A stretch of 64,000 nt of DNA from Leidyana gryllorum EB-2025a (GCA_048772705.1 JBLWGC010000085.1:1-64000), one strand, 5' to 3'. Shown: positions 25,186 through 64,000, counted from the stretch's first letter. Numbers and translations are program-made. The notes: generated by a model from the sequence alone, not told the origin.

Positions 25186-25287
25186 TCAGACCAGAGGTCC
25201 TCAAGAAACTCGAAGCGTTAAAGCGAGCGCCTCACTGCACCATCTAGTAAAAGGCGAGAGGGTGATAAGTGTTGAGGCTCTCCACAC
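25186..25287 (-). ncRNA. U5: U5 spliceosomal snRNA
   Basis: Invariant loop I GCCTTTTAC (25255-25247) closed by CACC-CTCT/AGA-T-GGTG, outer stem GCCTCA/TGAGGC, Sm-like AGTTTCTTG and 3' hairpin GGACC-TCT-GGTCT. Confidence 0.85.
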
Positions 25288-25747
25288 GAATTTTGGAGCT
25301 GAGACCCGCCAGCCGCCGGAGACGGCGTGTGTACTGGATGTAACGGATGGGTAATCGACTTTGTCGACCCAACCAATGATCTGAAGTGATGTCGGCCCAC
25401 CGCTGATCGATGTTTGACTGACACTCGCCTGGTGGGATAACTTCCCATTGTGACCCGGTTGGGAGGCGATACTAACACACTGAAGCAGATCTTAAGGTCC
25501 CTCAGGCTGGGCTGGAGACTCTGGACGGTGCTCACCCGAAGGTGTGCACAGTCAAGGGACACCCGTGTGGTCACACCAGGCTGGGAACAGAGCGGGTCAG
25601 CCACACACTTTGGACAGGGTGGGGGAGAACCAAATGGAACTGCTTCTTTTATCAATTCTCAATTCGTTGACTTTTATGCGGGTGGGTGTCGGTCGAGGGG
25701 GAGACGAGACGGGACTGATATTTTCAACAAAACTTCGAATAAAACTC

Positions 25748-25958
25748 AACTTACCTGCGGGTTGCAGTGTCTGGCTCAAGAAGCGATGCGCAGGGGGAGG
25801 AGCAACCACTGCACTCTGGTGAATGTAAGTCCCTCGGGAGGGTCACACATAGTGTGGTTCTCCCACCTGAGACTTTCTGAGAGGGCGGACGGGGCTCGAC
25901 TCGACGCCGACATTCGAGACTAATTTGAGCAAATTGAGTGAGATCGGTCAATCACATC
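25748..25958 (+). ncRNA. U1: U1 spliceosomal snRNA, variant A (extended)
   Basis: 5' AACTTACCTG, SL1 loop GCTCAAGAAG, SL2 loop CTGCACTC, Sm-like AATTTGAG; homologous to the copy at 62880; 3' end approximate. Confidence 0.85.
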
Positions 25959-26699
25959 GAGACCCCCAGGATGCGACAGCTTTATGTTGATGGACAGTTG
26001 ACTCGGACGACGATGAAAAAGGAGGTGGACACTCTGTGTGGTACGCGGTTGTCATATTAATGAAATCTTCAAGTCGGGGATGAGGGAGGCTAATTATGAG
26101 TATGAGGTGCATTTAGGTGGTGGTCGGGTGGCGCCACAGAGCAGCCGTGCCCTCCGTGCAGACCCTTGGAGACATCTCGTAACTGACAGTGACTTATGTC
26201 GCCATGTACGTGCACTCGCGAGGTATTGCCTAGATCTCCTGGATCGCTGCCGTTTGCAATATCTGCCTCGTTCTCGAGAGCGTGCCGTGCCAACTTCCAC
26301 AAGATCTGAAATGGCCAAATATTGTAACAGCCGATCTGCTAATTGTTCGGATGCGTGGTGTAAGCATCACTGTTCCCGCTCCCGTTTCCTCAGTGAGACG
26401 ACCTCGTCGGGCGTATGGGTGCATGAGTAAAGCGCTCTATTCGGTGGAGGGCAAATGGGAAACGTAATGGCAGCTTAACCTGGGACACTTTGTGCATCTG
26501 TGTACTGTCGCCGCAGCCACTGTGACTTGAAACCCGTGCGCCCCACGACACAAGATCGGAACTTTCTGTGAGGCGGAAGTGGACTGGGATCTCCACGATC
26601 TGAAAGAATCTTGTCTCGAGTTCGGGACACTGATTCCTTGGTTCGGCCGACTCTGATTCGGAGACGCCGTGGGAGTTGGGGGCACGAGAAGTCATTGTG

Positions 26700-27593
26700 T
26701 CGCTCCTGTCCGCCGTCTCCGAATGAGGGCCGCTCAAACTCCCACCCGCCTGTCTCGATTCCCTGTAAAAAATCTTTTCACATCGTCAACCGCAAACGAC
26801 ACCAGGGGCGTCTCATCTCTCTCGCCGAATATGACTTCCAACGTAGTGCCAAATCCGAGATCAGCTACTTCCTCAATCAATGTGAAATTTTTCTTACACC
26901 CTCACGAAGTTAGCCGACAGGTATCAATGTATACGTCAGTCTGCCCGCTCCCGTCTCCGCTTTCGTTGCCTTCCATACCACCACCCGAAACACATCACAT
27001 GTAGCCAGAAGCTTACAGCAAATATTGTCTGATCTCCACCCTTGAGTTTTGCCTCAAGAACACACAAAACCTTGTGAACAGAGTCGTGGAGTGTGGAAGG
27101 CCCTGTGGCACAGTTGCCAATCACACCGGTTGCAGCCGCCGTGTGATCTTAAACGGAACGGGCTTCTTGAGCTGCGCCGAGACGCAACGCCGAGTCTCCA
27201 GACGGAAGGACGTGGAGGAGACTTCATCTGTCTCCAGGGTATCATGGCCTGAGCCCCACGACGACCGCGAGCCATATATTTTCCCGCCCCTCTGCGTAGA
27301 GTATTGTGCAGAACACATTCAAAAGGCCCCGTATCCCCAATCTGGGTCAGAGGAAGCGACAATTCGCGAGTCGAAAGATCAAACAGTTCCGACTTGCGCA
27401 TCCACGATCTGCCGAACATATAGCGGCCAATCTGTCTGAATATCGAAGATCCCGAGAAGCCATCATGCACCTACCGACGAAGTCTATCACCTACACCCCA
27501 CATGTCTTCCGTCGTCGAGAGCACAGGCGGTGTCAGGGTGAATTTGTCTTGCCGGTCTCACCTGTTTCAGAGAGGGGAATGGGGAACAGGTAA
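26700..27593 (+). pseudogene. Possible decayed third paralog of the 28.1/32.4-kb genes
   Basis: AKSEISYFLNQCEIFL resembles AKARLRYFFDNVSQIL; KIKQFRLAH resembles RLEDVRAAH; no long ORF. Confidence 0.3.
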
Positions 27594-35311: not shown

Positions 35312-35721
35312 GTGAGCCGTTAATTCGTGATCGGTTCTGTAGGCCGATCAGCGTTCGGAACTGCCGTAAGGTCGACCGTAGGGTTTTGATCTTCCTCTTG
35401 GTTGCTTGCCGCCTTGCTCCTTAATCCGTCCTTCGCCATCGCGTAGTTCAATTAGTCAAGTCAGTTCAGTCCGTGCCGAGCACACGCGTGTTTGGATGCC
35501 GGTGTCTCCGTGTCAGCCGGCCCCAATCGTCATATAGATCACCACACATAAAATATAAACAAATAAAAGATGCAAAAGGGGGTTCACTAATCTAGGGTTA
35601 CAGTACCCTAACACTCCGTGTCACACAGGGGTTTGACGAATCAGAGGTGCAAAGGCATCTGTTAACTCTGTCAACAACACGAGCTAAGTAGATCCAGTCA
35701 ACAAGGTCACGCCGATACAAC

Positions 35722-35822
35722 TGATTGGAGTTTGCGGGGTCCTGGGAGGGGTCCTGGGAGGGGTTTGGATCGGTGGTGACGCGGTGTTGGATTGGCGTGA
35801 CCTCCTCAACTTGTTCCGACAT
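35722..35822 (-). repeat. Inverted copy of the 3' part of the 333-bp element, fused to the full copy
   Basis: Reverse complement of 36068-36156 with an internal 12-bp duplication. Confidence 0.9.
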
Positions 35823-36156
35823 TGATCTGTAATAGACACACAGACACAACCCAGCTGCATCGCCCATTGGGACGATGCCGCACACAACTACAAAAGCACA
35901 GATAGAATAGAAAAGACAGACAGAGCGAGAGATGCGCGACTCTTAATCAGTGACTATAGATCAACAAAACTACAACTCAACTACTACAACTTCTACTACT
36001 CATCATACCCGTTATAACCCGATCACAGAGCCTACGCCTACAAAGGCGATCCTCCAAGGAACCAGACATGTCGGAACAAGTTGAAGAGGTCACGCCAATC
36101 CAACACCCTGTCACCACCGATCCAAACCCCTCCCAGGACCCCGCAAACTCCAATCA
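35823..36156. mobile_element. Dispersed element of about 334 bp with TGAT...ATCA ends (solo-LTR-like, no TSD visible)
   Basis: Near-identical to 46579-46911 with the same precise ends. Confidence 0.65.
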
Positions 36157-36712: not shown

Positions 36713-39700
36713 TCATTGCTCCCCTGGACCATTCCAGAAACATTGGAGGATTTCTTTTGGGGCTGGAGGGGTCTTGGTGGTAAAGCACTTTTGCAACACC
36801 ATGGCAACGGCTTCAGCATCTGTTGCGGGAAATTCTGCTCCGCTGGCGGCCGGGGCGGTGGTGGCGGCGGTGGAGGCGGCGGTGGACTGCTCCGTCATTG
36901 TCTCCCCTTCGATTCCTGCCAAGCTGTGTTGGCTGAGGTCAGAGTCGGGATGGTATAGTTTCTGGAGACCCATCACCATCTGCTTGGCGACATCTTCTCC
37001 CATCCCCGCTTCACCTTCCGTTTTGTGCCATTTAGCAGTAAATTGCGTCTCGGGGTAAGCTGGATTGGTCCTCTGTTTCGGATGGAGTGTTACCTCGCGG
37101 TTTGCCAACCATTTGAGGACGCTAATCGCTTCCTCACCTTCCTCGTAAGTCAGAGGCTTCAAGGCAACATATTCCAAAACTCCTGCCGAGATCACGGCCG
37201 ACTGCGAGTCGGGGGAAGTTTCCAGACTTTCCTTGATCAGTTGGACCGTGGGAGCTCGTCCAATCATGCGGGCAGCATTCCTGAGAGCGTCTGGAACGCG
37301 TTTACCACCGACTGCAGTAATGTGTACGGGCTCCTCGCGTATGGCCGATTCGGTGCTGCCCAGGCATGGTACCGCGGCATCAGGCATCTGCGCGGCCACC
37401 CCGGCTTGAAGCTTCTCTTCCTTCAACTTCCGCTCAACGTACCCAATAGGGGCCTTGCAAACTTCCAGACAATCAGCCTGATCAGCTTCGGGTCTTGCAG
37501 AGCACACTTCCTCACAAGTATAGTGAAACTTATCGAAGTCTGATTTGGGACCGGCTTTTTGTTGTTGGGGGCCAGTCTTCTCAGCGGCACGTAAGTATAT
37601 CGGCCAAGTGACATGCTCATTATCGCAATCCTTACACTCTACCCCAATCACGCTTCCATCAGCTTGCTCTTCACCACAGATCCATAGGGGGTTGGAAGGG
37701 TATAACTCCTGATCCGGCCTCCGCGGCGGCTCGCTGCAAATCATGTCTTCTGGAACATTTTGGCCCTTGTAAGCAACCTTGTAGAGCCTGGTGAGTCGCT
37801 CTTCATCCTCAAAGTGACCGAACAGTACGATATGACGACTTTCTTCTTGTCGTTGTGCTTTGATCGTCTCATCCGGGATTTGCTGTTCTTGGGCAACGGA
37901 CTCCCCGGCCGGGTCGGGGCAAATACCGTCTGCTATTCGTTGTGCTTTGATCCTCTCCCGCCGGTTTTCCAGCCACTGGTCGAGCTGTGGCTGGGGCAGG
38001 AGGGGAGGGAACCTCGGGTCCGCAGGCTCCCCACACGGCTCTTCTTGGACACCGAGCTCGAGCTCCTCGGACAGATTGATGCGACGACCTTCCAGGGGAG
38101 TTTTCTTCAGCCACCCAACATTCGGATCATTGCAGTCTGAACATTCAATCGCACTCAAGGGTCCATCCTGTGCGCGTTGAGCACAGAGCCACTGGTCGGG
38201 AGCGCTCGTCTGCTCCGGGTCGGTGCAGATCATGTCATCTGGAACATCTTGGCCCTCGTAAGGAATTTTGCCAATTTTGTCCTCAATGTCATCAGGACGT
38301 AGTCTGGCAGGCCTGATGCGAACCCGGTTGGAGAGAGGGATAGGTGGGTCGGCACGCAGCTTTTGCTGACGACGGAGAGTGAACTCGTTCTCATCATCCT
38401 GTGGCTGGGCGGACAGCTTGACGCGACGACCGGGTCTCCGGTTGGAGACAGGGAAAGGTGGGTCGGCAGGCAGCGTTTCCAGCTGGAGGAGAGTGAACTC
38501 GTCCTCATCATCCTGTGGCTGGGCAGACAGCTTGACGCGACGACCTCTCTGTTGTTGCTCGTGACGAGAGGGGTCGGTGCAAAAACCGTTTGCTATTCGT
38601 TGGGCTTTGATCCTCTCCCGCCGGTCTTCCAGCCACTGATCGAGCTCTGGCTTGGGCAGGAGGGGAACGAACCTCGGGTCCTCAATCTCCCCACACGGGT
38701 CCTCTTGGACAACGGACTCGGTGTTCGCGGATGGCTCGGTGCAAAAACCGTTTGCTATTCGTTGAGCTTTGATCCTCTCCCGCCGGTCTTCCAGCCACTG
38801 ATCGAGCTCTGGCTTGGGCAGGAGGGGAACCAACCTCGGGTCCTCAATCTCCCCACAAGGGTCCTCTTGGACAACGGACTCGGTGTTCGCGGGCAGCTTG
38901 ATGCGACGACCTTGTTGGGGAGCCTGGTCCAGCCACCCAGCTTTCGCATCAATGCACTCTGAACATTCAATCGCAGTCAAGCCTCCATCCGGTGCGCGTT
39001 CAGCACAGAGCCACCGGTTCGGCACAATCAACTTAATAATAGGGCCCTTCTGCCGGTCGTAGCAGATCATGTCCTTTGGAACATCTTGGTCGTCGTATCG
39101 AATTTTGCCAATTTCGCATGGAGTCTTTGATCCCTTACAAGAGTCGTTGGAGACAGGGATAGGTGGGTCGGCACGCAGCTTTTGCTGACGACGGAGAGTG
39201 AACCCGTTCTCATCATCCTGTGGCTGGGCGGACAGCTTGACGAGACGACCGGGTCTCCGGTTGGAGACAGGGAAAGGTGGGTCGGCAGGCAGCGTTTCCA
39301 GCCGGAGGAGAGTGAACTCGTCCTCATCATCCTGTGGCTGGGCGGACAGCTTGATGCGACGACCTCCCTGTTGTTGCTCGTGATGAGAGGGGTCGGCGGC
39401 CGGGTCGGGGCAAATACCGTCGGCTATTCGTTGTGCTTTGATCCTCTCCCGCCGGTTTTCCAGCCACTGGTCGAGCTGTGGCTGGGGCAGGAGGGGAATG
39501 CGCTTCGGGTCCTTAATCTCCCCACACGGGTCTTCTTGGACAACGGACTCGGGCTCCGCAGACGGCTCGGGGCAAATACCGTCGGCTATTCGTTGTGCTT
39601 TGATCCTCTCCCGCCGGTTTTCCAGCCACTGGTCGAGCTGTGGCTGGGGCAGAAGGGGAATGCGCTTCGGGTCCTTAATCTCCCCACACGGGTCCTCTTG

Positions 39701-42055
39701 GACAACGGACTCGGGCTCCGCAGACGGCTCGGGGCAAATACCGTCGGCTATTCGTTGTGCTTTGATCCTCTCCCGCCGGTTTTCCAGCCACTGGTCGAGC
39801 TGTGGCTGGGGCAGGAGGGGAATGCGCTTCGGGTCCTTAATCTCCCCACACGGGTCCTCTTGGACAACGGACTCGGGCTCCGCAGACGGCTCGGGGCAAA
39901 TACCGTCGGCTATTCGTTGTGCTTTGATCCTCTCCCGCCGGTTTTCCAGCCACTGGTCGAGCTGTGGCTGGGGCAGGAGGGGAATGCGCTTCGGGTCCTT
40001 AATCTCCCCACACGGGTCTTCTTGGACAACGGACTCGGGCTCCGCAGACGGCTCGGGGCAAATACCGTCGGCTATTCGTTGTGCTTTGATCCTCTCCCGC
40101 CGGTTTTCCAGCCACTGGTCGAGCTGTGGCTGGGGCAGGAGGGGAATGCGCTTCGGGTCCTTAATCTCCCCACACGGGTCCTCTTGGACAACGGACTCGG
40201 GCTCCGCAGACGGCTCGGGGCAAATACCGTCGGCTATTCGTTGTGCTTTGATCCTCTCCCGCCGGTTTTCCAGCCACTGGTCGAGCTGTGGCTGGGGCAG
40301 GAGGGGAATGCGCTTCGGGTCCTTAATCTCCCCACACGGGTCCTCTTGGACAACGGACTCGGGCTCCGCAGACGGCTCGGGGCAAATACCGTCGGCTATT
40401 CGTTGTGCTTTGATCCTCTCCCGCCGGTTTTCCAGCCACTGGTCGAGCTGTGGCTGGGGCAGGAGGGGAATGCGCTTCGGGTCCTTAATCTCCCCACACG
40501 GGTCTTCTTGGACAACGGACTCGGGCTCCGCAGACGGCTCGGGGCAAATCCCGTCGGCTATTCGTTGTGCTTTGATCCTCTCCCGCCGGTTTTCCAGCCA
40601 CTGGTCGAGCTGTGGCTGGGGCAGGAGGGGAATGCGCTTCGGGTCCTTAATCTCCCCACACGGGTCCTCTTGGACAACGGACTCGGGCTCCGCAGACGGC
40701 TCGGGGCAAATACCGTCGGCTATTCGTTGTGCTTTGATCCTCTCCCGCCGGTTTTCCAGCCACTGGTCGAGCTGTGGCTGGGGCAGGAGGGGAACGAACC
40801 TCGGGTCCTCAATCTCCCCACACGGGTCTTCTTGGACAACGGACTCGGGCTCCGCAGACGGCTCGGGGCAAATACCGTCGGCTATTCGTTGTGCTTTGAT
40901 CCTCTCCCGCCGGTTTTCCAGCCACTGGTCGAGCTGTGGCTGGGGCAGAAGGGGAACGCGCCTCGGGTCCTTAATCTCCCCACACGGGTCTTCTTGGACA
41001 ACGGACTCGGTGTTCGCGGCCGGGTCGGGGCAAATACCGTCGGCTATTCGTTGGGCTTTGATCCTCTCCCGCCGGTTTGCCAGCCAGTCTTCGAGCTCTG
41101 GCTGGGGCAGAAGGGGAATTAAGCTCGGGTTCTTAATCTCCCCACACGGGTCTTCTTCGACAACGGGCTCGGGGCAAATACCGTCTATTATTCGTTGTGC
41201 TTTGATCCTCTCCCGCCCGTTTGCCAGCCAGTTATCGAGCTGTGGCTGGGGCAGAAGGGGAATTATGCTCGGGTCCTCAAACTCCCCACACGGGTCTTCT
41301 TGGACAACGGACTCGGGCTCCGCAGACGGCTCGGGGCAAATACCGTCGGCTATTCGTTGTGCTTTGATCCTCTCCCGCCGGTTTGCCAGCCAGTCTTCGA
41401 GCTGTGGCTGGGGCAGAAGGGGTTTTACGCTCGGGTCCTCAATCTCCCCACACGGGTCAGCGTCATCAGGACGAGGCTGCTTTTGCAGCGCCAGCTTTTT
41501 GAACTCGTACTGCTGTCTGGGTTTGGAAGTTGAACGTGAGAGCGTAGTGACTTCGTGGCCTTGATCAGCAGTGGCATTGGAGGGCTGCAATTTGGAAACG
41601 AATGAGAATCAGCTCGTCAACTCGACGTTACCTACCTGAGTGCCCGTAACCCAATTCAAGACCTTTCGGACTAGGCCAATTTCAGAGGCGGCGGTGGCAT
41701 TCTGCTTGGTGGCTTGCTCATGCAAAAATTTGATCTCGCCGCCTTTCGATTTCGATTTCGATCCTTGGGTGGCTCTTTGATACTGACGTGTCGCCTTGCG
41801 CTTTGCTTGATGATTGGGCTCAGGCAGCCAGTGGGGTACAGTTGCGATTGGCTGGCCATTCACTCTCGCCACATGGGGTGCAGTGCTATTCGCTGTTCCG
41901 TTGTGAGAAAGAACGGTTCCATTGCCCTCGACTGAGTATGTCAATGTCGAGTTCCCGTTGAAGACTTGAGCAGTAAGCAGAGGCAGATGCTGCATCAATG
42001 AGGGGCTCTTAGAGTCATGAGAAGTAAGGGATTCAACCCGCACGTTGGGAGCCAT
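36713..42055 (-). CDS. Repeat protein of about 1760 aa, LTAQV-leader family
   Basis: Exon 1 (42055-41636) joins the 1625-aa ORF through a phase-0 51-nt intron, 41635-41585 (GTAGGT...TTGCAG); C-terminal domain shared with the 43403 and 47337 genes. Confidence 0.85.
39400..41460 (-). repeat. 162-bp coding tandem array, 13 units (54 aa each), with 3 more dispersed units at 37.9-38.9 kb
   Basis: Period 162 nt (motif recurs at 39497, 39659 ... 40631); 8 units are almost identical. Confidence 0.95.
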
Positions 42056-46025: not shown

Positions 46026-46073
46026 GTTTACCCTCATTTCCCCCCCCCTCCCCCTCCCTGGGACTCGTCTCAG

Positions 46074-46086: not shown

Positions 46087-46121
46087 CCGAACTCGCTGGC
46101 CAGATTTCTACCGAAAAACTC

Positions 46122-46578: not shown

Positions 46579-46911
46579 TGATCTGTAATAGACACACAGA
46601 CACAACCCAGCTGCATCGCCCATTGGGACGATGGCGCACACAACTACAAAAGCACAGATAGAATAGAAAGAATAGACAGAGCGAGAGATGCGTGACTCTA
46701 ATCAGTGACTATAGATCAACAAAACTACAACTCATCTACTACAACTTCTACTACTCATCATACCCGTTATAACCCGATCACAGAGCCTACGCCTACAAAG
46801 GCGATCCTCCAAGGAACCAGACATGTCGGAACAAGTTGAAGAGGTCACGCCAATCCAACACCCCGTCACCACCGATCCAAACCCCTCCCAGGACCCCGCA
46901 AACTCCAATCA
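46579..46911. mobile_element. 333-bp dispersed element, second full copy
   Basis: TGATCTGTAA...CTCCAATCA, near-identical to 35823-36156. Confidence 0.65.
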
Positions 46912-48922: not shown

Positions 48923-49105
48923 AATCTCGGCCTTCCAGCTCAGATCAATTGTATTTTAAAGTTCTTTCCTTGGTAATGCATGGAAGGAGACGAATGACTC
49001 CATCTTTTACCAATATTTGTTAATTGGATCACCAGCCATGATGGTGGATTGTCCCTATCTTGCTGTGTGGGGAGCCTTTGAGCCAACACTATCTCCAACG
49101 GCTCC
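48923..49105 (+). ncRNA. U2: U2 spliceosomal snRNA, variant B
   Basis: First ~50 nt nearly identical to variant A; IIc covaries (GGTAA/TTACC); SL III CAC-CAGC/GCTG-T-GTG; SL IV GAGCC...GGCTC with loop CCAACACTAT. Confidence 0.85.
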
Positions 49106-49899
49106 GTCCTGTCCATTTGGACGACAATTGTTGTGCACAATAATTCTTTACTGAGACACAAGCTATAATCTTTGGTACCATCTTCTTGATCGACTGCATG
49201 GCTGGCTGCCTCTGCTCCGCCAACCTGGGCTGATAAAAGGAAAAGGCATGATTGAGACATGATCGGACCTAGACAGGAAGCACAGAGGAGACGGTCTCTC
49301 CAATGACTAAACGCACACGGTGACGTACGTGTCTCCCGAAACCAAAAGTTCCAGGCGGGATGACGACCATAGAGGGACCCTACTGTGCGTACTCTTTCTT
49401 TTGGAGAAGATAGACCATAGGCTGCTAAGCTGGGTCTACGTCGGCTTGGGGAGCCATTTAAAGATCTACAAAAGCAGGCATTCGTTTCCTTTCCTTTAAT
49501 GTGACACAGTCCTATCACTAGAATGCTGCTAAACAACTAGTAATCACATCACAGTGGCAGATCCCCTCCACACCTACTTAGGCTGTGACATACTCGCACT
49601 ACGAGGAATATAGCAGGTTTGTCATTGGTGGGCACGAAGTATTACTTTCGTTCTCCATTGCCCAATGAAGTGCAGCAAACTCCTGAGCGTAATGAGCACA
49701 AATCAGGCATTTGAGTCAGTGATCTTCGAGGAGCAGCGAGAGTACCGACGTTGTTCACAAGCCGTTGGATGGGCTGATGGTTGTGTGGTGCCTCCTCTCC
49801 ATATTTGTACCCGACCATCCCAGGAGAGAGGGTTGTTGCTCAATGCAGACCGTTGTCTAGGGAGAGGTAATTTCTCTCTTTTCGCTCATCACTCTACCG

Positions 49900-51610
49900 C
49901 CCTCGTGGACTTACAAATCCGAGGAGATATTCTCTCCTCTTGTCCAGATGCCCTGACTGCGATTGGGAGATATAAGATAGCAGCACTTTCGATTACCGAC
50001 GCCCAGTTCACGAGCTCTAAGTGAAGTCCCTGGAGCTGCTCATTGCACTCGGAGCGATATGCTAGTTGGGCGCGGCTTGTGCTGGCGCAGGGGTCCGCTC
50101 CGTAACGAGCCTGGGGGCGATAGACATTGACCTTGCCAAAGTGCAATCGACAGTGCTGCGCTCACAGCTCGTGTGAATCAGGACAAGAGCCTGGAGAGGG
50201 CTGATGCAGTTGTGGACACCAGAGAAACAGCTGCCGAGGCCGCTCCTGTAGATGATGCGGTTGCTGCTGCTGAGGCCTCTTTCGTTCGACACTTCGAAAC
50301 AACCGCATCCACAAGCTCTCTGTGGAATATGAATTCTGCCGAAAATATCTCCTTCAAGTCCTGCAAGACTAGGATAGTGTCCTTCGCAGTCTCAGCCCAC
50401 AATACGTCAGACCCTGAGCGATTGTCGCAAGTTCCACGTACGAGGATAGACAATGGAGCTTCTGCACTGGTGCTTTCTCCATCCAATGGCTCCATTGAGG
50501 TATTTACGACACCTTCCGAGGGCAGCGTGTCCGTTCTCGACAATCAATCTGCTGTCACGTTTCCCTTCTCACGAAAAGTGTACTGCGTAAAGTGAACGGC
50601 TCTTTCTGAAAGCATTTCCACACATCGTATGGCCTGGATATCGACACTGTCAGCCTTCTTGACGAGAGACGCTGGGTGTGTCTTGTTTGGTTGACTTTCT
50701 GTCGCTTTTGCCCGGGCGGCTGCCTCTTCCGCTGCCTCCTGTCCGTTCAGGTGCGAAGCCATATGTGGAGAGTGGCCGTTACACTCGCTGTCTCAGCAGA
50801 TAGGCCTGCTCGCTCTTTACCCCAGGGGTTTGCCCGCGGTGTTTCCCCCCGCGCCCGTGTCAACCCCTACAGAGCGCCTTCCGAGGTGCCGTTTCTCGCG
50901 CCCGACATCTCTTCAGCGGGCAGCTTGGACGCCGTCTCGCCTCCCGCATCTCTGCCATCTGCAGGGGGGCGTTTGTTGTGCGTACTGGTGGTGCCTTTCG
51001 GATTGCTCGCTTTCGCAGGGATGTTGGACGCCGTCTCCCCCCTCGGGCCTTTGTCGTCTGCACCGCACTGCTCATTAATCCTCGCCTCCAACCCTCTATG
51101 ATACGCGTTTTTCGTTCCATTCTCCGGTATCTTTCACTTTGCTGGTTAACGTTCCACTCGCACGTGCCGGCGTGTCCAGCTGTGAGGCCACTAGATTGAG
51201 CACCGCCTGTGGACGTCGAGTAGGTTCCGTCACTCCCATTTCCCCCAATCCGTGATTGAAGAGGCCTTTCAAGGTTTGGACGAGTCGGGGGGGGGGCTGG
51301 TGCAGTCGAGTTGCTTCTGGCGTTATGCGCTGCCTTCCTCCATTCTCCTGAGCTCTCACCCGCTGGAGGTTGTTAGAGGAGTCCTCGCTTTCGGCCCCGA
51401 AAAAAATGACATCGTATTTACTCCCCTGACGGGCGTCGGGGAGCACGTGCCCGCAAACGCCACTGTTGTGTGTGACGTTGTGGTACCCGATGGGGGTCAC
51501 AGGTGCGATGGGCACTCCGAAGTTACCAGCAGCCACCAAAGTCGTCAACAATGCGTCATCAAATTCGTTGCCTGGCCATTCTGGGGGGGCCAACGGACGC
51601 TTGCAGTCAT
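49900..51610 (-). pseudogene. LLTTLVAAGNF-leader family member with a 1-nt deletion about 13 codons after the ATG
   Basis: GGC CAG GC AAC here vs GGC CAC CGC AAC in the 57427 paralog; the downstream exons are fragmentary and the 3' end is approximate. Confidence 0.55.
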
Positions 51611-51649
51611 CGCTCAAGTCTAATTGAGGGGAATTGGCACTCGATGCGA

Positions 51650-53272
51650 TCTAAGTCAAAGGACCAGAAAAGGTGTTCGGAGAATTTTGCGACAATCGAT
51701 GTGATTCTGGTTTGTGAACCGTTACTGTCCTGTCTAGTTGGCGCGAGCAGAGGTGAGTGCGTCATTTGTTTTTTCGTTAGTTTGATCTGTTTGGTGCGTT
51801 GGCATAGTACTTGGCATCATCTAACTGTTGTTTTTGGTAGTAGATGTTCAATCACTAAATCGGTAAAAACACGTGTGTGTCAAAGTGTGTCTGGTACGGC
51901 CGGGCACGAGGTGCTTTACTACGACTAAGCTGCTGTTGACAGAGTTAACAGATGCCTTTGCACCTCATGTCCCAAAAGAATTCAGAGTAACTACTTAATG
52001 AACGGTGCACCTAAGCAGGCAGTCATATGTCTCATCGGGTAGTGCCGGTCGTAAGCAGCGTGGAACACTGCCTGGTTCGGTGTCCATAAGCTATTCCTTG
52101 GGTCCTTAAGATGTCGCCCTTACTGCTGGTAGTGTCAATCAGAAATCAGAAACAGACACAACATCATGTTTTGAATCTGATCCAAAAAATGATGTTGTGT
52201 CTATTTCTGATTGACACTACCAGCAGTAGGAGCGACGTCTTAAGGACCCAATAAATAGTTCATGGACACCGGATCAGGCAGTTTAGCCACAGTAAAGCAC
52301 CCCTGTGCCCGGGGAGACACACTACTTCTACACCCACGCGTTTTTACATAATTGTGTAGGTCGGCGAAACCCGCAAGGGTGAGCCCGACCATTACCGTAG
52401 GTTTTTCGGGGGCTCTTAGGGGGCACCAGAAACGACCTTTTAGTGAATTAGTGATTTGATTAGAACCTTTAACCTGATTATCTCGCTTACCTTAGGATTA
52501 GTAGTAGCCTCATTCGTTAGCAGCCAGGTTTTGGGCAAACCCCCCCTATGTGTAACATTCCAAACTTATACTTCTCCGAGTACTCCCTCACCTAACTTAC
52601 AAATCGCTAAGTCGACGCCTCACATGCCAACAGACAAACAATCTAAACAGTATCATTCACACATAACAACTTCCCAACTTGCTCCATATCCACTTAAGCA
52701 AACTGAGCATATTACACATCACAGCATACTTACCCAAATGGTACTCATACACTCACGCAATCATGCATCTGCAGCTCATATACTCTCACAACTCAATACA
52801 TAACAAGCAAGATACCTGTCAACATGCTCAGTAACGAAACTACATCATCACAGTCTTTTCTTAGCACAATACACACCACATCAGATTTCCCTTTTGCCTA
52901 ATACAGCAACCGCAACGTGTATGCAATGGAAAGGTAAACACTCGCGACCACGCACACACAGTACGATGCAGCTTCAACCACACACGTAAACCACATAGCT
53001 CGACTGCAAACAACAGTACCAGTAGCCATCGAAGCCGACCGAAACGGCCAATCAAAGGTTACAGCCAAACTAGTCAGTGATTGAACATCCACGAACTGAA
53101 AACAACAACTAGATGCACCCAGCTAGACTAACAAAAACCAGCCGACGTTCCCACCTGCGCTTCCTCTGATGACCGTTGTGGATGAAAGGAGTTGACGGTT
53201 AAGACACACCTACACAGACAGTGTGAGGCACCCGGCCCCATTCGTCCGATCATTTCCGGTGCGATGTCTTGG
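51650..53272. repeat. Nested degenerate palindrome (foldback) with a ~95-bp inner stem
   Basis: Arms 52067-52167/52189-52282, 51863-51920/52291-52347 and about 51650-51858/53076-53272. Confidence 0.85.
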
Positions 53273-53849
53273 TGAATGCGAAGGCCGCGAAAAGTCTGGC
53301 TATGCTCAGCCCCCTGGCTCCCCATAGTCAGGGGTACACACTCAGGCAGAACGGAGTGGTGGTGGGCGGCTAGCGTCCACCTTGGAGTCCCTCATCTGCT
53401 TCTCGAGTTCAGTTGGTGGTGGCAAAGGCGGACGCAGTGCACCGTCCCAACCACAGTCGCGATGATAATCATCTCGTATTGGACACTTTTGCTCTATCGC
53501 AGTCCCTGGAAGAAGGCTAATTGATTATGGCTAATTCCTTCACTGGGTTCGTGGATTTTGCCACTTGCGGCTGACAGTTTCTCTTTCGTATGATGACCAC
53601 GACAGAAATCGGACGACATATGGTCGGCACCTTCGTTGCACCACCAATCACTTTTCACAAATGTTAGTGTAAATTCCATAGGGTGATTCCGTGTGTTGAA
53701 TGCACAATCTAAGCGTCAGAGGGAAGTCCCGCTACAAACAGCCGTTGGCAGGAGCCGTTGGGGCGAGAGACAATGCCTTTCCGTACTCGGTGTCAGAGGG
53801 GTAAGAAAGGACTTGGCGATGGGCTGTCCTGGAGCCAGAATCTTTGTGG

Positions 53850-56800
53850 TCAGGAAAGAGCCTGGGAGAGAGCCGAGAATGCCAACGCAGCTGCGGTGAC
53901 CGCCGCTGTAGCTGCTGAGGAGTCTGCTGCTGCAGCTGCGGAGGAGTCTGCTGCAGCTGCGGAGGAGTCTGCTGCAGCTGCGGAGGAGTCTGCTGCAGCT
54001 GCGGAGGAGTCTGCTGCAGCTGCGGAGGAGTCTGCTGCAGCTACGCATTGGTTGGGGGGAGGGTTACAGGAGCTCGCTACATGAGTTTCGTCACAGACGA
54101 GCTCAGTCACCAGGTCCAGCTGTTGGACGGCATCCGCAAAACCCAGTTTGGCTCCTTGGCTCAACTCCCAATCAATAACGTCCTGATAACCCTCAGGGCG
54201 CATTACGTTGTCCCAAGTCGTGACGCAATCGTCCTTGAGGGTGACTAAGGGTTGGCAATCTTCCGGCTTTGACCCGTTCCTCCAGGCCCTCGAAACTTCT
54301 GAGTCCACTTTCGACAACACTTGCCATTTACGGAGGAACTCTTTGTAAATGCGCCCATCGGAGTCGTTTCCGTTCGGGGACACACAAATCCTAATTGTGG
54401 TGGTGGGGATTGCATCGTTCTTATCCAAGCTAGTCCCCTCCGTGTGCACTATCCAATCGTAACGGTCGACTTCCTCCATAAGTTGGGCCAACTGCGACAG
54501 CTCGGCTTCTGTGAGTGGTTTGTTGACTGCTTTGTCAATGACAGCGGCCTGCAGTGCGCTCCTTTGCAGACACAGCCGGGGGTCGAGCAATCTCGAAATG
54601 GTGGCAGGCCACTCATGGGGGGCTATCCTATCCAGAGCCTCCACCAAGGCTTCTATGACCTCTCGCGAAGGAATTGTGTTCGACTCCGAGAACACTTCTG
54701 CGATTATCTTACCCTTGCCGACGGTCCCACGGTGTGAACTCCACTGCATAAAGTGAACGTTTTTCCCCAAAGCATCCCTGCGCGTCGTATTACCTGATAT
54801 CCAGGGAGGGGACACCGAGGTGTCGGTTGTGAGTCGTTCGGTGAAGTCCTCGCTGCGGAGGAGTCTGCTGGTAGCTCGAAGGAGTCTGCTGGAAGCTCGG
54901 AGGAGGCTGTTGGAAGCTCGGAGGCTGCTGGAAGCTCGCATTGCTTCGCGGGAGGGTCGCAGGACACCGCTCGACGACGCCAAGGGTCTCCAGGACAGAA
55001 GTTCTCAGGCCCAGAATACAGCTTTCGTAGGACCTGCGAGAGATCGCTCGCAGAGCCGGGAGGGCGCATTACGTTGTCCCAAGTCGTGACGCAACCGTCC
55101 TGGAGGGTGACTAACGGTTGGCAGTCTTCCGGCTTTGACTCGTTCCTCCAGGCCCTTGACACTTCTGAGTCCACTTTCGCCAAAACTTGCCATTTACGGA
55201 GGAAGTCTTCGTAAATGCGCCCGTCGGTATCCTTTCCGTTCGGGGACACACAAATCTTGAATGTTGCGGGGCGGATTTCATGGTTCGCATCCACGCTTTC
55301 AGCATCCGTGTGCACTGTCCAATTATAACTGTCGACTTCTGCCATATGTTGGGCCAACTCCACCAGCTGGGCTTCTGTGAGTGGTTCGTTCACTGCTTTG
55401 TCAATGAAAGCGGCCAGCACTCCGCTCCTTTGAGTACACAGTCGATCGTGGAGCAAAACACCAATAGAAATGGGCCACTCATCTTTGCTTATCCTGTCGA
55501 AAGCCTCCACAAAGGTTTCGAAGACCTTTCGCGAAGGAATTCTGTCCGAATCCGAGAACACTTCTGCGGTTATCTTACCCTTGACGAAGGTCTCACGGTA
55601 TGAAGTCCACTGCAAATTCTTTCCAAAGCATTTCCACTCGTCGAATTACCTCAAATCCAGGGACGGGACACCGAAATGTCGGTTGTGGCGCGTCCGGTAA
55701 AGTCCTCTCTGCGGAGGAGTTTGCGGGAGGTTCGCATTGGTTCACAGGAGGGTCACAGGAGCCCGCTAGACCACGCGTGGCGGCCTCAGCTTCGTCACAG
55801 ACCCGCTCAGTCATCTGATCCAGCTTTGGGATGACATGCGCAAAATCCATTTGGACTCGTTGGCTCGACTGCCGATCAGTATGGTTCCGATTGCCGGGAG
55901 GGCGCAGTACGTTCTCCCAAGTCGTGACGCAATCGTTCTTGAGGGTGACTAACGGTTGGCAGTCTAGCGGCCTTGGCCTCCTCTTCCAGTTCGATGTAAC
56001 CCATGAACCTACTCCCGCCGCAGCTTGCTTCTCACGGAGGAAGTCTTCGTAAATGCGCCCGTCGGTATCCTTTCCGTTCGGGGACACACAAATCCTAATT
56101 GTTGCGGGAGGGATTTCATAGTTCTCATCCAACCTGTCAGTATCCGTGAACACTCTCCAATTGTAACTGTCGACTTCGGCCATATGTTGGGCCAACTTCT
56201 TCACCTGGGCTTCTGTGAGTTGATCGTAGACTGCTTTGTCAATGACAGCGGCCAGCAGACCGTTTCTTTGAGTACACAGCCGGGGGTCCAGCAAACGCGG
56301 AATAACGGAAGCCCACTCACAGGGCTTTAACCTATTGAGGGCGTCCACAAAGGTTTCTATGACCCCTCGCGAGGGAAACTTGTCCGACTCCGAGTACAAT
56401 TCTGCGGTTATGTTACCCTTCACAACGGTCCCGCGGTGTGAAATCCGCTGCATAAGTGAACGTCTTTCCGCAAAGCATTCCCGCACGTCGTATTACCTCA
56501 AATCCAGGGACGGGACACCGAAGTGTCGGTTGTGAGTCGTTCAGTAAACTTCTCGCCGTTCTCCTCCTCTCTGGTGTTTCCTCCTTCGCCGCCCCTTCCG
56601 GCACCTTCACGTAGGCAGACAAGTAGTGGGACTACCATTGAGCACTCACTTTTTTCGCAGATGAACCCGACTCTCCTTTAGCGGAGGGTTCCAACGCCTT
56701 ATCTGCCCTCGCACCCGTTCCATCTACTACAGAGCGCTTGGTGCGCGTGTTGGCGCCTTCCGAAGTGCCCTGTTTCGGGGCTAAGTTCTCTTTAGGGAAG

Positions 56801-57427
56801 GCTTTGGACGTGGTTCCTCCCCCCGCGCGTTGGACGTCTGCAGCGGCTTGCGCTGGGTCCCTCGAGTTTGACACTCGGTGATTCGCTTTCTTCGTCCCAT
56901 TCTGTGCTATCTTTCACCCCACTGCTCAGCTTTCCACTCACCTGTGCCGGCGTCTCCAGGTGTATTGGGGCACTCATGTGAGCTGTACCTGTGGCCGCCG
57001 AGTGGGTTCCGTTATTCACAATTCCCGGGCTCCCATTCCGTACTTGCGAAGGCCATTGACGCTTTGGACGACTGGGCGGAGCCGGCCTTGGTGCGGCCGC
57101 ATTGCTTCTAGCGTTTTTTGCTGCCTTCCTTTGAGCCTCCCGAGCTCTCACCCGCTGGAGCTCGTGAGGAGTCCTTTTCACCCCCGCATGGCCGGAATCA
57201 TATTTACTCCCTGTCATCACCGTCCTCCACTGACGGGCGTCGGGGAGCGCGTGCCCCCCACCGCCATTGTTGCGTGTCACGTTGTGTGTGACGTTGTGGT
57301 ACCCGACCGGTGTCACAGGTGCGATGGGCACTGTGAAGTTACCAGCAGCCACCAAAGTCGTCAACAATGCGTCATCAAATTCGTTGCGGTGGCCATTCTG
57401 GGGGGGCGAACGGACGCTTGCAGTCAT
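53850..57427 (-). CDS. LLTTLVAAGNF-leader protein with three tandem copies of a domain of about 280 aa
   Basis: Phase-0 introns 56496-56448, 55649-55610 and 54793-54744 join ORFs 56413, 55593, 54704 and 53850; each domain has ICVSPNGxDxDGRIY and DCQPLVTL. Junctions upstream of 56622 are not resolved. Confidence 0.8.
53906..54041 (-). repeat. 21-bp coding tandem repeat (AAAADSS) x5-6
   Basis: GCTGCGGAGGAGTCTGCTGCA units. Confidence 0.95.
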
Positions 57428-58287
57428 CGCTCAAAGTCTAATTATGGGTAATCGAAACTTGATGAGGTTTAGAGTAAAAAGATCGAACAAAAGGGCTCGA
57501 AGATTTTTGAGAGAGTCGTCTGTCACTGGGAAAGTTTGCTCGACAGCGGGGGAAGCTGCGCCGATCTGGGCAATGTGTCCACACACAGACACTGATGGGG
57601 AGAGATTGATAAAGACATCATGTCACGACTCATTCTGGACACAGAAGTGAGTCGAAAGCGAACTCCGATAGACGCAGAGGCGGCCGTCGCATGAGAGCGA
57701 GTTGGCGGCCCATCAATCGGCTTTCAGTCACTTCCGGAGAGAGGTGTACCTGAGTAGGGCGAGTACTGTCCATCATCAATGTTCGAAAAACATCACCCCC
57801 ACGAAAAGATCTCAAGCCATACGTCAAAGTCGCCTTGTCGGGGGCAGAAAACCTCCGTCGACGTTGTCCGCACGAACGTCTGGTGATGTGCGGGCGGCTG
57901 TATCGTTCCGCCATCGTGGGCCGTCTTGCGTGGCAGTCTGCGAGAGAGCTTCATGGATGCTCTCTCGTGCCTCAAAATTGCGACGCTGGTAGGCTGAGGG
58001 AGCGGTGGCTAGGTTCTGAGAATCATTTCATACCGCTGTCTCGTCGGCTGACCAAGGATCATCAATAGATTGCTGACGACCTTTGTGAGAGGTTATGTTC
58101 AAAGGAGACGACTGGCAATACTTAGGCGTGGAGACGGCCCATCGATGTTTTAGTTACAATGGCTCGCCACCGACGCGAATGAATGCGGTCAACTTTCGGT
58201 CACAGCCATTTCAAATTGGGAGTGGGTGCGACGGACAAGGGTGTTGCCAAATAGCAAAGGACAGTTCTGCGCTCCCAGTCGCTGCAA

Positions 58288-60109
58288 TCAGGGAAGGACT
58301 CTGTGGAGCACCGCCGACGCCGCTGCCGACAACACGGCTGTAGCGGCCGAGACACTCGCTGTAACTGCGGGGGAGGCAGCTTCCGCTGCAATGGAGGCCG
58401 CAGCTGCGACTGTGGAGGAGGCAGCTTCCGCTGCAATGGAGGCCGCAGTTGCAACTGTGGAGGCCGCCGCCTGCGCAGTCGTGGACATACCATCTTGGCA
58501 CCCGATAAGCTGTGTCACAACTTCCAAGTTAAACCCAATGTCAGCGAAATTCAGTCTCTCAGGCCGCTTGATTATATAGTCCAGTCCCGCCCCGAGGGGA
58601 GGCCAGAGTATGTCTTGCCAAGTCCGAGTTTCACACTTCGAACTCGTAGGGACCGGCTGCATATTCTCTGGCAACTTCCTCGCCTCCTCCCACCTCGCTG
58701 TGACCTCTGATCTCACCCCCGACTTGTACTGCACCTCACAGAGGAGGTCCTTGTGGAGCTTCACTTCAGCCGCCTTTTCTTGCGGGCTGAGATTTCGTCC
58801 GTTCCTCTCCATATGAATATTAATCTTTGTGGGGAGAGCGATACCGTCGGGAGTAGAACGCCAGGTATTAACATTTGTCTTCATGTGCCAGTTGTAGTCC
58901 CCCACATCTGACATACCTTGGGCCATCGTCTGAATCTGCGCGTTTGAGAGTTCTTGGTTGGCTGCTGTGTGAATAAAAGCGGCCTTCAGTCCTTCGGCCT
59001 CAATTCCCAGGTTCTTTTCCGCATATCTCAGCGCAGTGGGAAACCGATCTTCTCTCGGTAACCCATTCAGTGCATCCAGAAGGATGTTAATCATATAATT
59101 CGGAGGCGCAGTACCGGAGTCCGATATCCATTCGGTCGTCATGTTACCTTTCCGGACGATCTTGTGGTGTTCCACCTGCACAAAGTAAAAGTCTCTCTTG
59201 GCTCGATCCCACATATTATATCACCTGATGGCTCTCGTACGACCCAAGTTCTTCCTCATAGGATGCTTCCCAAGTCCAGTTCCACGCTCCCCACTCCACC
59301 TCTGCTTTTCCCTCTCCCTTCGCGAGCGAATTCGTATTTTGGAAGCTGTCACTTAAACACTTACTGCCTTATCAGCGGGTCCCGACTGCTCGTTGCCTCC
59401 CGAACTTCCCTGTTTCGGGCCCGACCCTTCTTTGGCGGAGGGTTTGGCGTCGGAAGCTTCACTTTTGTTACCCTCGTCTCCTGCGGAACGCGTCTGATTC
59501 CCCGTTCGGCCGCCCTTCAAACTTTTCCCGCCTCTCTCCTGCGATGTGTGATCAATCAGACGTTTCAGCAGTTCAGTCACCTGTGCCGGAATGAGAAGGT
59601 CTGACAGAGGGGTGATGCCCCGAGGCGGCTGGTCACTCCTATCCACCTCCTATGAGACTTGACCAACCCAAGACACAAGATTTCCTTACTGCACGCGGAG
59701 TGTTGAGTTTAGCTGGAGCACTTGGCTGGTTGGGGGGAGCTCGAGACTGAGGTTTCGGAGCGCTGGAGGTTGAGTTCCGTCCGGGGGTGGGAGGGGCGCT
59801 TCGAGCGGCTCTGTGAGCAGCGTCCCTCCCCATCTTCCGGATTACGCGTCTTTTCTGCTCGTGCTCAGTCTTCACTCTCTGATTCCCGTGCGAAACCCAA
59901 ACGTATCCAGTCTGCTGTCTCTGTCTCTGTCGAGCGTCGGGGAGGGGAGCCATAGGGCCCCCACCGCCAACAACTGTGAAATTGTGCCCCGTGGGCATAG
60001 GTCCGATGGGCGCTGTAAAGTTGCCAGCGGCCACCAGTGTTGTCAACAATGCGTTGTCGGACTTGTTGTGTTGACCATTCTGTCGATTTGAGCGGATGGT
60101 TAGAGTCAT
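58288..60109 (-). CDS. LLTTLVAAGNF-leader protein with one domain copy and an Ala/Ser tail
   Basis: MTLTIRS...NALLTTLVAAGNF; homologous intron at about 59224-59176; domain KGNMTTEWISDS...YNWHM...SEVTARW; 45-bp repeat x2 at 58.37-58.46 kb. Confidence 0.7.
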
Positions 60110-61862: not shown

Positions 61863-62679
61863 CTTCGCGGAAATATTCGAAACATTAGGTGTGAATTCAT
61901 CCTTACCAATTGTGGAGTCGTCATCAACCTCACATGTCCACGGTTGGGGGCAGGAGTGGAAGGAACACTCTCACTCTGTGCGGTTTCATAAAAGTCAGCT
62001 GCACTTTCGCTTAACCCGGTCGCTCCACTCGCCACTGAGATGACAAGTCGCAGAGACAGCTTGTTCGCGACTCGAGCCTGAGGCCAGCATCGTATGGAGC
62101 AGACACCTGGCATGTTAAAAAGCGCGACTTTGAAAATACGTCTAAAATTTCAAAACGACGCCAAAGTACACAATTTCCCAGATTAAACGATTTACAGAAC
62201 GCCATCGCATCGCATCGACTCCACAATTTACGTTTTTACCCTCCCGACACCTGCAAGACGGTCAAAGACTGCGAGTAGTGCGCTCGATGATGTTCACATT
62301 TGGGGCATACTGCCATGCCGCCGCGGGCGAGTGCGATGGTGTCCCATCAGGATTGCCGCGACCTCCTCGATCTCCGCATTTGAACGCCATCTGAATAATA
62401 ACCTCTCCAGCGGGTGTAGCCTAAAAACCTCAGTAGTTGGTCTCCAGTCCAGACGGTGAAAACCGTTCTCCTGGCGATCGAGTCTCGCCCCAGTTCGATG
62501 ACTCTCATGGGGCCCTTCCCAGTCTCACTTGGTGGAGATTCAAAAAATGCAGCCGTTAGCATCAGATATTGGCTTCACGAAGTTGAATCGCAGCCGTGAC
62601 ACTCTCGATCGGAGACTTAGGTCAGACCGCGAGACCCGTGAAGTGTCGTTGACCGACATTACAAAGGAGGTTAAATAAT

Positions 62680-62880
62680 TCGAGGGAGTACCCAAGCGCT
62701 TTGCCATAAACAAAGTCGCTCTGTCGGTGTCGAACCGAGTCCCGTCCGCCCTGTCATAAAATCTCAGATGGAAGCATCACGCATTGTTGATACTTTCGGG
62801 AGCGTCACCAGAGTGCAAAGGCTGCTCAGCTCCCTGCCCACCTCTTCCTGATCAGGTGAAATGCAATCCGCAGGTAAGTT
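62680..62880 (-). ncRNA. U1: U1 spliceosomal snRNA, variant B
   Basis: AACTTACCTGCGGATTGCA; SL1 TTCACCT-GATCAGGAAG-AGGTGGG; SL2 loop TTTGCACTCT; GGGCGGACGGG block shared with variant A; Sm-like GTTTATG. Confidence 0.9.
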
Positions 62881-63904
62881 AAAAATTGCCGAATTTTCAA
62901 ATGCAAGGGGACTTCGTTATGTCACTCGAAGCTACCGTCCCAGGCGACAGTTTCTCTATCCCTACAAGCATGAGTCGTTACAAGAGTTGTGTCGATGTCA
63001 AGAGCTTAGCATCCTGAAGCTCGAGTTTTGGTTTCTGGCTGGCTAGCAGACATCATGAGAACAGGAAGACCAACAACCTTCGACATCAGACGTAGTCAGC
63101 CCATCGGAAAGATCAACTGGGCTGAGACGAAGTGATTGATCATCACGAGAAAGTCCTGTCTGCAACGGAGAGTAACCTTCGGATGCACCTGGTGCTGAGA
63201 ACTAAAACAAAATAAAGGCAGCCAATATTCTATAGATTGATGGTTGATTAGAGAGAAGACATAGGGCAAATCTTTCAGGGTGGGGGGCGAGATAGACTTA
63301 CCAACGGCATTCCCGCCCAGATCACTGCAACCAGGCGGGGGACTAAAGCCGACGGCAAGTAAATCGAAGTGTTAGGATAGCGCGACGAAGACTCTGGTGG
63401 AGGAAACACGGTGGGGATAGTGAATGGCTACGAATCTGGTGAGATGGACGTTGAAGTTCCCAAGGAGAGAGAGCATTATGATCATGGAATGACCTGACTG
63501 GGGAGAGAGCCTAATGAAAAGCATTCTGTTGGACTCAATCCAAGCGTTACCACCGATCGAAAGAGGGAGGAGCTTCGTGTTGTTTCATTCCTCACCTCCG
63601 AGAATACCCACCAACTCGAGAGTTTGCACATTTGAAGTTATTGAGAGAGATAGTCTAAGGTGTAAGAAGTTGTTAAAGATCAGATGTGTATCAAGCCCAT
63701 GCGTTAGAGGTAACTCCTTACGCTAGAGACTAGAGCCGAGTAGATCCAGTGAATAACTCAACCATCAGATTTCAGACATCGAGGTTCTGTAGGTCGAATA
63801 CATCGGAAAGTGTGGTGGCGACTAAGCTTTCCGCTACAGTTTCACGGAGACTTCTCCATAACAACACTACCAAAGTGCAATACGATTGTCGCCGAGCTCG
63901 ACCG

Positions 63905-64000
63905 GAAAGAGCCATCTGAGAGAGTGCTGACTCAGAGTCTCTCCACACAGCTAGATAGGGAGTACCCCCTATCGCGGCTGGTGATCCATTTGAGAAATAT
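63905..64000 (-). ncRNA. U2: U2 snRNA variant C, 3' half only (5' part lies beyond the window)
   Basis: Minus strand ATATTTCTCAAATGGATCACCAGCC...GCTGTGTGGAGAGACTCTGAG-TCAGCACTCT-CTCAGATGGCTC aligns with variant B at 49013-49102. Confidence 0.8.

Follow-up and report, generated by a model that had tools for sequence, protein, structure and literature searches.

Divergent U1, U2 and U5 small nuclear RNA genes in a 39-kb region of the Leidyana gryllorum genome: probable local members of genome-wide families maintained under purifying selection

The stretch of DNA analysed here, the 64,000-nucleotide interval C85:1-64000 of Leidyana gryllorum EB-2025a (hereafter the window; the assembly comprises 15.5 Mb in 237 contigs), contains within 39 kb six genes encoding spliceosomal small nuclear RNAs (snRNAs): one U5, two U1 (U1-A and U1-B) and three U2 (U2-A, U2-B and U2-C). 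The genes were called with Rfam profiles, both at curated thresholds (gathering scores of 40 bits for U5, 46 for U2, 69.5 for U1 and 65 for Protozoa_SRP) and in a permissive search, and with a second covariance model, R1, built from the genome's own U2 genes. All six snRNA loci proposed by a first-pass annotation of the window were recovered by Rfam and R1, at positions differing by 1-3 nt at most from those it had given. A seventh small-RNA gene, encoding the RNA of the signal recognition particle (SRP, 7SL) and absent from that first list, was detected between U5 and U1-A. These genes, and the cassette formed by three of them, are distributed as follows.

25157-25918, strand not applicable: cassette U5(-)/SRP(+)/U1(+), 84-95% identical by blastn to sequences on C152, C186 and C82 inside these bounds only
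25188-25290, minus strand: U5 snRNA gene (RF00020, 44.5 bits, over the gathering score of 40)
25427-25650, plus strand: SRP (7SL) RNA gene (weak SRP match at 25444-25628 in the permissive search; Protozoa_SRP, 31.6 bits, E 1.7e-4, under the gathering score of 65)
25747-25910, plus strand: U1-A snRNA gene (RF00003, 45.6 bits, E 3e-8, under 69.5)
46117-46302, plus strand: U2-A snRNA gene (RF00004 match at 46117-46301, 54.4 bits, over 46; 179 bits with model R1)
48918-49113, plus strand: U2-B snRNA gene (RF00004, 40.3 bits, under 46, E 1e-4; 209.6 bits with R1)
62722-62881, minus strand: U1-B snRNA gene (RF00003 match at 62729-62881, 42.1 bits, E 3e-7, under 69.5)
C85:63900-64095, minus strand: U2-C snRNA gene (RF00004 match at 63900-64094, 52.8 bits; 223.6 bits with R1)

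U2-C crosses the edge of the window, which includes the 3' half of the gene (63900-64000), and Rfam searches of the final 6.4 kb of C85 past the window revealed no additional snRNA gene beyond U2-C. In Rfam alignments, the U2 genes present the U6-pairing sequence AGAUCA and stem-loops I, IIa, IIb, III and IV, the last of these with a GCACU-type loop. The U1 genes have stem-loops 1-3 at a four-way junction, stem-loop 2 being capped by a UUGCAC-type loop, and also a Sm site and stem-loop 4; U1-A fits the U1 consensus fold completely. The U1 lineage as a whole is divergent, since the best U1 gene of the genome scores only 68.9 bits and is itself below the RF00003 gathering score.

Few RNAs are as strongly conserved as snRNAs, and where their genes are multi-copy, the copies are as a rule kept similar to one another. 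The first-pass annotation had described the six genes as a hidden cluster of widely differing paralogs and had proposed, as a check, a covariance search for U1, U2, U4, U5 and U6 across the assembly and past the window. Performed with Rfam profiles (and with R1 for U2), this search led to the identification of at least 42 U1, 16 U2, 14 U5, 8 U6 and 5 U4 genes, all counts being lower bounds, and showed that these families are scattered through the genome. Tandem arrays of a 342-bp U1 unit, in which the copies score near-identically, are present on C216 and C159, and pairs of U2 genes on C91 and C183. Five U2 genes, in mixed orientation and mutually very divergent, occupy 3.3 kb on C204 (160287-163597), a denser group than that of the window. 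Median pairwise identity in the genome is 43% for U2, 59% for U5, 73% for U1, 81% for U4 and 99% for U6. Within the window, U1-A and U1-B share 72% identity and the three U2 genes 71-83%, so that the paralogs do differ widely, as had been stated, and are not homogenised. In the U2 tree, U2-A, U2-B, U2-C and both copies from the 14.6-kb contig C183 form a single clade (support 86/97).

Counted by duplication unit, the six genes come down to three, namely the cassette, the U2-A/U2-B pair and the U2-C/U1-B pair. Considering approximately 45 units per 15.5 Mb, a Poisson model predicts 0.11 further units per 39 kb and about 0.3 places per genome with three units inside 39 kb, this being a rough estimate on lower-bound counts. 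The grouping observed is about at chance level, or at most mildly unusual, and part of it reflects local duplication. The claim of a special cluster could therefore not be maintained, the same families being present genome-wide and three units in 39 kb being close to the chance expectation.

To follow the helices across copies, a U2 structure of 44 pairs in 7 helices was taken from U2-C as aligned by Rfam, the 16 U2 copies were fitted to R1, and MAFFT alignments were prepared for 21 copies of U1 and 14 copies of U5. Slid pairing partners and 500 shuffles served as controls. This U2 structure replaced the output of RNAalifold, which on MAFFT alignments of U2 gave either the 5' helices only or a non-canonical 3' fold. 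In U2, 87.8% of the cells are paired, versus 34-49% with slid partners, and 39 of the 44 pairs have changed on both sides, versus 15-24. The corresponding values are 97.1% versus 39-45% of the cells and 24 of 38 pairs versus 2-7 for U1, and 94.3% versus 35-47% of the cells and 13 of 25 pairs versus 3-6 for U5; the shuffles gave 0/500 for each of the three families. In a structure-blind MAFFT alignment of U2, 12 of the 18 pairs in the 5' half have changed on both sides. Substitutions also avoid the functional core. The sequence ACUUACCUG is found at the 5' end of U1-A, U1-B and all 21 aligned U1 copies; in the 14 U5 copies, loop 1 and the helix that closes it do not vary, the outer helices covarying; and of the differences between U2-A and U2-B, 2 fall within the 48 core columns and 63 in the remaining 149 (p = 1e-7), the 5' core of U2-A being intact. 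Covariation and core avoidance are not the neutral, non-compensatory pattern that the first-pass annotation had set against its own proposal.

These data show that the snRNA families expanded via segmental and local duplication, and that the dispersed copies diverged strongly while purifying selection held the helices, the 5' end of U1, loop 1 of U5 and the 5' core of U2. We consider it probable that the genes of the window arose by duplication and then diverged under purifying selection without being homogenised; they would then be a local sample of the genome-wide snRNA families.

The U2 genes of the window are each preceded by a palindromic box.

46073-46085, plus strand: upstream palindrome GTGTGTCGCACAC, 31 nt before U2-A
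48875-48887, plus strand: upstream palindrome ATGTGTCGCACAC, with one mismatch, 30 nt before U2-B
C85:64126-64138: upstream palindrome of U2-C, past the window edge

The corresponding 13-mer, GTGTGYCGCACAC, has 17 exact copies in 15.5 Mb, 11 of them ahead of a U2 gene at a distance of 30-31 nt; the other six sites, one of which lies within large subunit (LSU) rRNA, have no U2, and the reversed pattern, used as a control, has no copy in the genome. Four of the five U2 genes grouped on C204 carry the exact box, and the fifth a variant, GTGTGCGGCACAC. Downstream of the genes, GGCGACAA is located 7 nt past the 3' end of U2-A and GGACGACAA 6 nt past that of U2-B, the distance being 6-8 nt across U2 3' ends. 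Throughout the genome, U1, U4 and U5 genes present a shorter YGACA right after the terminal stem-loop; U1, U4 and many U5 genes are also preceded, at a distance of 30-50 nt, by a GRGAC(A/G)..AC(G) box. In the window, U1-A has GGAGACGAGACGG upstream and CGACA after its 3' end, and U5 is followed by GACG. The upstream boxes are putative promoter signals and the (G)CGACA/YGACA motifs putative signals for 3'-end processing, suggesting that the copies that keep them can be transcribed.

The cassette of U5, SRP and U1 is a repeated unit. It measures about 0.75 kb, is present in at least eight copies and has limits that nearly coincide with the 3' ends of U5 and U1. Divergent U5/U1 pairs are also located on C12, C33, C35, C82 (two), C152, C159 and C186, and homology to several kb of flanking sequence was detected by blastn for the C33 copy alone (window positions 21931-26120). 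The copy of the window is compact, as it is missing a spacer of approximately 320 bp present between SRP and U1 in other cassettes. The SRP gene begins with GCCUGGUGGG at 25427, contains the helix-8 motif CCAGGCUGG-GAACAGAGC and ends with a TTTT run at 25650. In seven other cassettes, the interval separating U5 from U1 contains a match to the SRP clan (CL00003; 34-44.5 bits) in the same orientation as U1; one further SRP copy is linked to U1 with no U5 match (L053), and covariation in the SRP helix is visible among the copies of C12, C159 and C85. The U5 of the window has an exact loop 1, CGCCUUUUACUA, and shares 91% identity with the U5 on C33. U1-A, with a Sm-like site ACUUUCUG, shares 96-99% identity with six further U1 genes from cassettes, including those on C33, C152, C186 and C82. 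A literature search, itself incomplete, revealed no account of a U5-SRP-U1 module. The mechanical list of open reading frames (ORFs) includes one of 157 amino acids (aa) at 25450-25923 on the plus strand, which spans the SRP RNA and U1-A and is almost certainly spurious.

Local duplication is apparent around U2-A and U2-B, which are interleaved with genes of the LTAQV family.

36713-42055, minus strand: LTAQV paralog 1 (tblastn matches of paralog 2 and 3 exons at 41768-42055 and 36908-37330), no U2 upstream
43403-44922, minus strand: LTAQV paralog 2, two exons (ORFs 44560-44922 and 43403-44485), start 1195 bp from the U2-A start, divergent
47337-48281, minus strand: LTAQV paralog 3 (ORF of 314 aa), start 637 bp from the U2-B start, divergent

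The family has three members detectable in the genome by tblastn, all in the window and on the minus strand; paralogs 2 and 3 are 24% identical across 122 aa (E 7e-13) and have the N-terminal LTAQVL motif in common. The first-pass annotation had suggested a duplicated module consisting of an LTAQV gene and a U2 gene, and such a module is plausible, the order gene(-), U2-A(+), gene(-), U2-B(+) being that expected from a tandem duplication of gene and U2, but it is not established. The simple form of this model fits less well, since the spacers are unequal (1195 versus 637 bp), the only parts of the two units that blastn aligns are the U2 gene and its promoter box, a search upstream of paralog 1 found neither a U2 nor a remnant of one at E values up to 1, and, of the other two U2 genes of the window, U2-C is the closer to U2-B. 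The broader idea of a passive co-duplication with neighbouring sequences stands, as it is seen in three ways: in the repeated cassette, in the local U2 clade and in the position of U2-A and U2-B, each upstream of and divergent to an LTAQV gene. Paralog 1 also contains 162-bp (54-aa) tandem repeats, 82-97% identical, at 37886-41458 on the minus strand, within an ORF of 1625 aa (36713-41590). Pfam searches on 19 ORFs of the window found no known domain in the paralog families; weak homeobox-type matches on the repeat protein included no passing stretch and were disregarded.

The sequence of the U2 branch-site recognition region is unusual in this genome. GUAGUA is present in none of the 16 U2 copies; U2-A and U2-B have GUAUUU at this position and U2-C has GUAAUU. 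The 15 intact copies present UUGUA, then 3-8 variable A/U-rich nt (UUUAAA in U2-A, UUUUAA in U2-B and AUUAA in U2-C), then AAGUUCUU. A metagenome scan for this unusual core pattern gave 0 matches, and an incomplete literature search, which makes for weak evidence of novelty, found neither snRNA gene expansion nor GUAGUA loss reported in gregarines or their relatives. With the 5' end of U1 and loop 1 of U5 fixed in every copy, U2 is the only one of the three to vary at a site that contacts the substrate.

This variation bears on the repertoire of variant small nuclear ribonucleoproteins (snRNPs) put forward in the first-pass annotation, in which expressed divergent paralogs, chiefly those of U2, would build distinct spliceosomes dedicated to intron classes, life stages or neighbouring genes. 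The U2 family is under structural selection, the variable island changes in length and sequence across the 15 intact copies in a core that is otherwise invariant, and the three U2 genes of the window, like most other U2 copies, retain the upstream palindrome and the 3' box; moreover, human and Drosophila have variant snRNAs that are expressed and incorporated into spliceosomes (PMC8457000, PMC4291461). The identity of the U1 5' end and of U5 loop 1 in all copies, on the other hand, confines the variation of U1 and U5 to peripheral stems, and no variant could be tied to any life stage or class of introns. Two introns located beside LTAQV genes contain ordinary CUGAC/CUGAU-like candidate branch sites, an observation that is anecdotal with two introns only, and the proximity of the LTAQV genes is accounted for by tandem duplication, the third paralog having no U2. 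We thus regard such specialised snRNPs as unlikely; the proposal of a variant repertoire finds weak support in the U2 substrate-contacting site and none in the recognition sequences of U1 and U5, the variable island of U2 being the sole place where the sequence speaks for it. A bolder version, in which all U2 paralogs, including U2-A, U2-B and U2-C, would be expressed and form a set of U2 snRNPs with differing branch-site preferences in replacement of the universal GUAGUA rule, has in our opinion a slim chance of being correct.

Several observations weigh against duplication and divergence under purifying selection as the explanation of the whole set. U1-A, U1-B and U2-B score under the Rfam curated cut-offs, and GUAGUA is missing from every U2 of the genome. 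Fitting the U2 alignment to R1 inflates pairing, a bias that the slid control and the MAFFT count only temper, and the unit-clustering figure has the roughness indicated above. Transcription of any single copy would be deduced from conserved flanking motifs only. There are also signs of erosion: U2-B forms 39 of the 44 pairs of the U2-C structure, with five broken; U2-A forms 33 of 44, the 8-pair inner hairpin of stem-loop III being deleted; and in U1-B a private deletion has removed 5 nt from the 3' strand of the stem that carries the U1A-binding loop (stem-loop 2). Because of this erosion in U2-B, U2-A and U1-B, part of the local set may be non-functional. The statement that the paralogs keep their folds is correct for the genome-wide families, with compensatory changes at 39 of 44 (U2), 24 of 38 (U1) and 13 of 25 pairs (U5), and has to be restricted for these three genes of the window.

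U1-B belongs to a different U1 subfamily from U1-A and has the Sm-like site AUUUUAUG. It is 97% identical to the gene at C82:19068, with flanks just approximately 69% identical, indicating either long constraint or recent gene conversion. Compared to this 97% sister, U1-B shows further private changes, two of them in its upstream box of the GGGGACACAACG type and one a C.A mismatch within stem-loop 4, and it is likely a decaying copy. A case of neutral decay in this genome, which provides an internal contrast to the kept copies, is a U2 on C183 (13549-13717, minus strand) with AAUC for GAUC, UUGUG for UUGUA and AGAUUCAU for AAGUUCUU, whose 5' end is replaced by a 323-bp repeat resembling a miniature inverted-repeat transposable element (MITE).

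Such decay raises the question of whether the genes of the window could be relics, with one master gene per family and local copies that are untranscribed or dead and appear folded because they are young. The scores of U1-A, U1-B and U2-B below the gathering thresholds, the lesions of U1-B in stem-loop 2, stem-loop 4 and the upstream box, the five broken pairs of U2-B, the lost hairpin of U2-A and the existence of at least one true U2 pseudogene (C183:13549) would all be compatible with this idea. The copies are not young, however: they exhibit 17-29% differences in the window and far more genome-wide, yet the pairs have changed in a compensatory manner in all three families. Their substitutions shun the functional core, the palindrome and the 3' box are retained at fixed spacing, and the assembly contains no canonical master U2 with GUAGUA. 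A set composed of relics is therefore very unlikely.

Finally, mobile elements were considered as a possible vehicle of the snRNA genes, since young repeats lie close to some of them.

46579-46911, plus strand: MITE-like repeat of 335 bp, 277 bp downstream of U2-A, 97.6% identical to 35823-36156

This repeat is located outside the U2-A gene and carries a 75-bp inverted repeat; it is young, and other copies 82-98% identical are present on C104, C123, C138, C140, C202 and C230. The window contains two dispersed families of this kind, of approximately 323 bp (35321-35643) and 335 bp (35822-36156), with about 8-15 or more matches each, the best at 93-98% identity. In a transposon-driven dispersal, by retroposition or capture by mobile elements, the cluster would simply mark a transposon-rich region. 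The MITE-like repeats found 277 bp from U2-A and adjoining the broken U2 of C183 could be seen in this light, as could the 99% identity between U2-C and C183:8494, which is confined to a patch of 269 bp. The snRNA copies are nevertheless full length, with upstream elements and 3' boxes and no poly(A) tail, which would not be the case for retro-copies; nearly all of the 8-15 or more copies of each MITE-like family are away from detected snRNA genes, and no transposon ORF is present beside the snRNA genes of the window. This makes transposon-driven dispersal a scarcely credible origin of the local set.

Returning to duplication and divergence under purifying selection, the window can be read as follows, its seven small-RNA genes falling into three duplication units. 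The first unit is one of the at least eight copies of the U5(-)/SRP(+)/U1(+) cassette; the second, the pair U2-A and U2-B, is interleaved with the tandem array of three LTAQV genes; and the third consists of U2-C and, 1 kb downstream, U1-B from a second U1 subfamily. Most copies, including U5, U1-A, U2-A, U2-C and probably U2-B, would still be transcribed from their own conserved signals and act as largely redundant spliceosomal RNAs, U1-B being a copy that may have begun to decay. The co-location of the three units would mostly be a by-product of local duplication in a region rich in paralogs and not an operon-like functional cluster.

Other elements of the neighbourhood can be mentioned. Arrays of orphan paralogs without Pfam domains extend over 50479-60083 (for instance 54020-54853, 55061-55727 and 55709-56556, or 51024-51698 and 56804-57518) and C85:67462-68889, and relatives of these genes flank U2 on C183. 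An intron-less ORF of 418 aa (13388-14644, plus strand) corresponds end to end to DUF4432 (E 1e-82); as DUF4432 is mostly a bacterial domain, horizontal acquisition of this gene is possible. A hairpin resembling mir-627 (52118-52232, minus strand; 37 bits for a gathering score of 86) is located near a repeat fragment (51931-51966) and is probably a repeat-derived hairpin; the sub-threshold Rfam matches to mir-627, isrG, sR58 and IRES_Bip were all taken as chance.

Altogether, a genome of only 15.5 Mb contains dozens of snRNA genes that differ from one another as much as do the snRNA genes of distant phyla and have preserved their folds. This provides a natural covariation experiment inside one genome and a test of the sequence that a spliceosomal RNA needs. 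With GUAGUA absent and copies differing at that site, the choice of the branch point in this lineage becomes directly testable. To this picture the window adds a local duplication of U2 with a neighbouring gene family, a compact copy of the cassette, a U2-specific candidate promoter box and a shared 3' box.

Variants of U1, U2 and U5 in human (PMC8457000, PMC13172311) and snRNA isoforms in Drosophila (PMC4291461) are expressed and enter spliceosomes. The families described here resemble these animal variants in the presence of several non-identical U1, U2 and U5 paralogs per genome, with their own promoters and with variation mainly outside recognition sequences, and in both cases redundancy versus specialisation is a matter of debate. 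They differ from them by a far greater divergence (median of 43% for U2), by the lack of GUAGUA in all copies and by the small size of the genome, and also in that expression has been measured in animals whereas the present families are known from genes alone. Human RNU1 and RNU2 are clustered snRNA arrays kept uniform by concerted evolution. The uniform 342-bp U1 repeats of C216 and C159 are similar to these arrays, in contrast to the genes of the window, which are dispersed or loosely linked and unhomogenised, with only short conversion-like patches such as the 269 bp shared by U2-C and C183.

A known route linking U2 genes to repeats is provided by the Utopia retrotransposons, which lack long terminal repeats (non-LTR) and target U2 snRNA genes (PMC4640811). 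The repeats found close to U2-A are short and non-coding, and neither a Utopia-like ORF nor a split U2 was found in the window. Linked modules of small-RNA genes exist in protists, with snRNA and 7SL genes associated with tRNA genes in trypanosomatids and clusters of snRNA, 5S and spliced-leader (SL) RNA genes in dinoflagellates. The cassette is comparable to these modules (for related context, see PMC3101222) in bringing together different small-RNA genes, transcribed by different polymerases, in one short repeated module. It differs from them in its composition, as it combines U5, SRP RNA and U1 and includes no tRNA, 5S or SL RNA gene.

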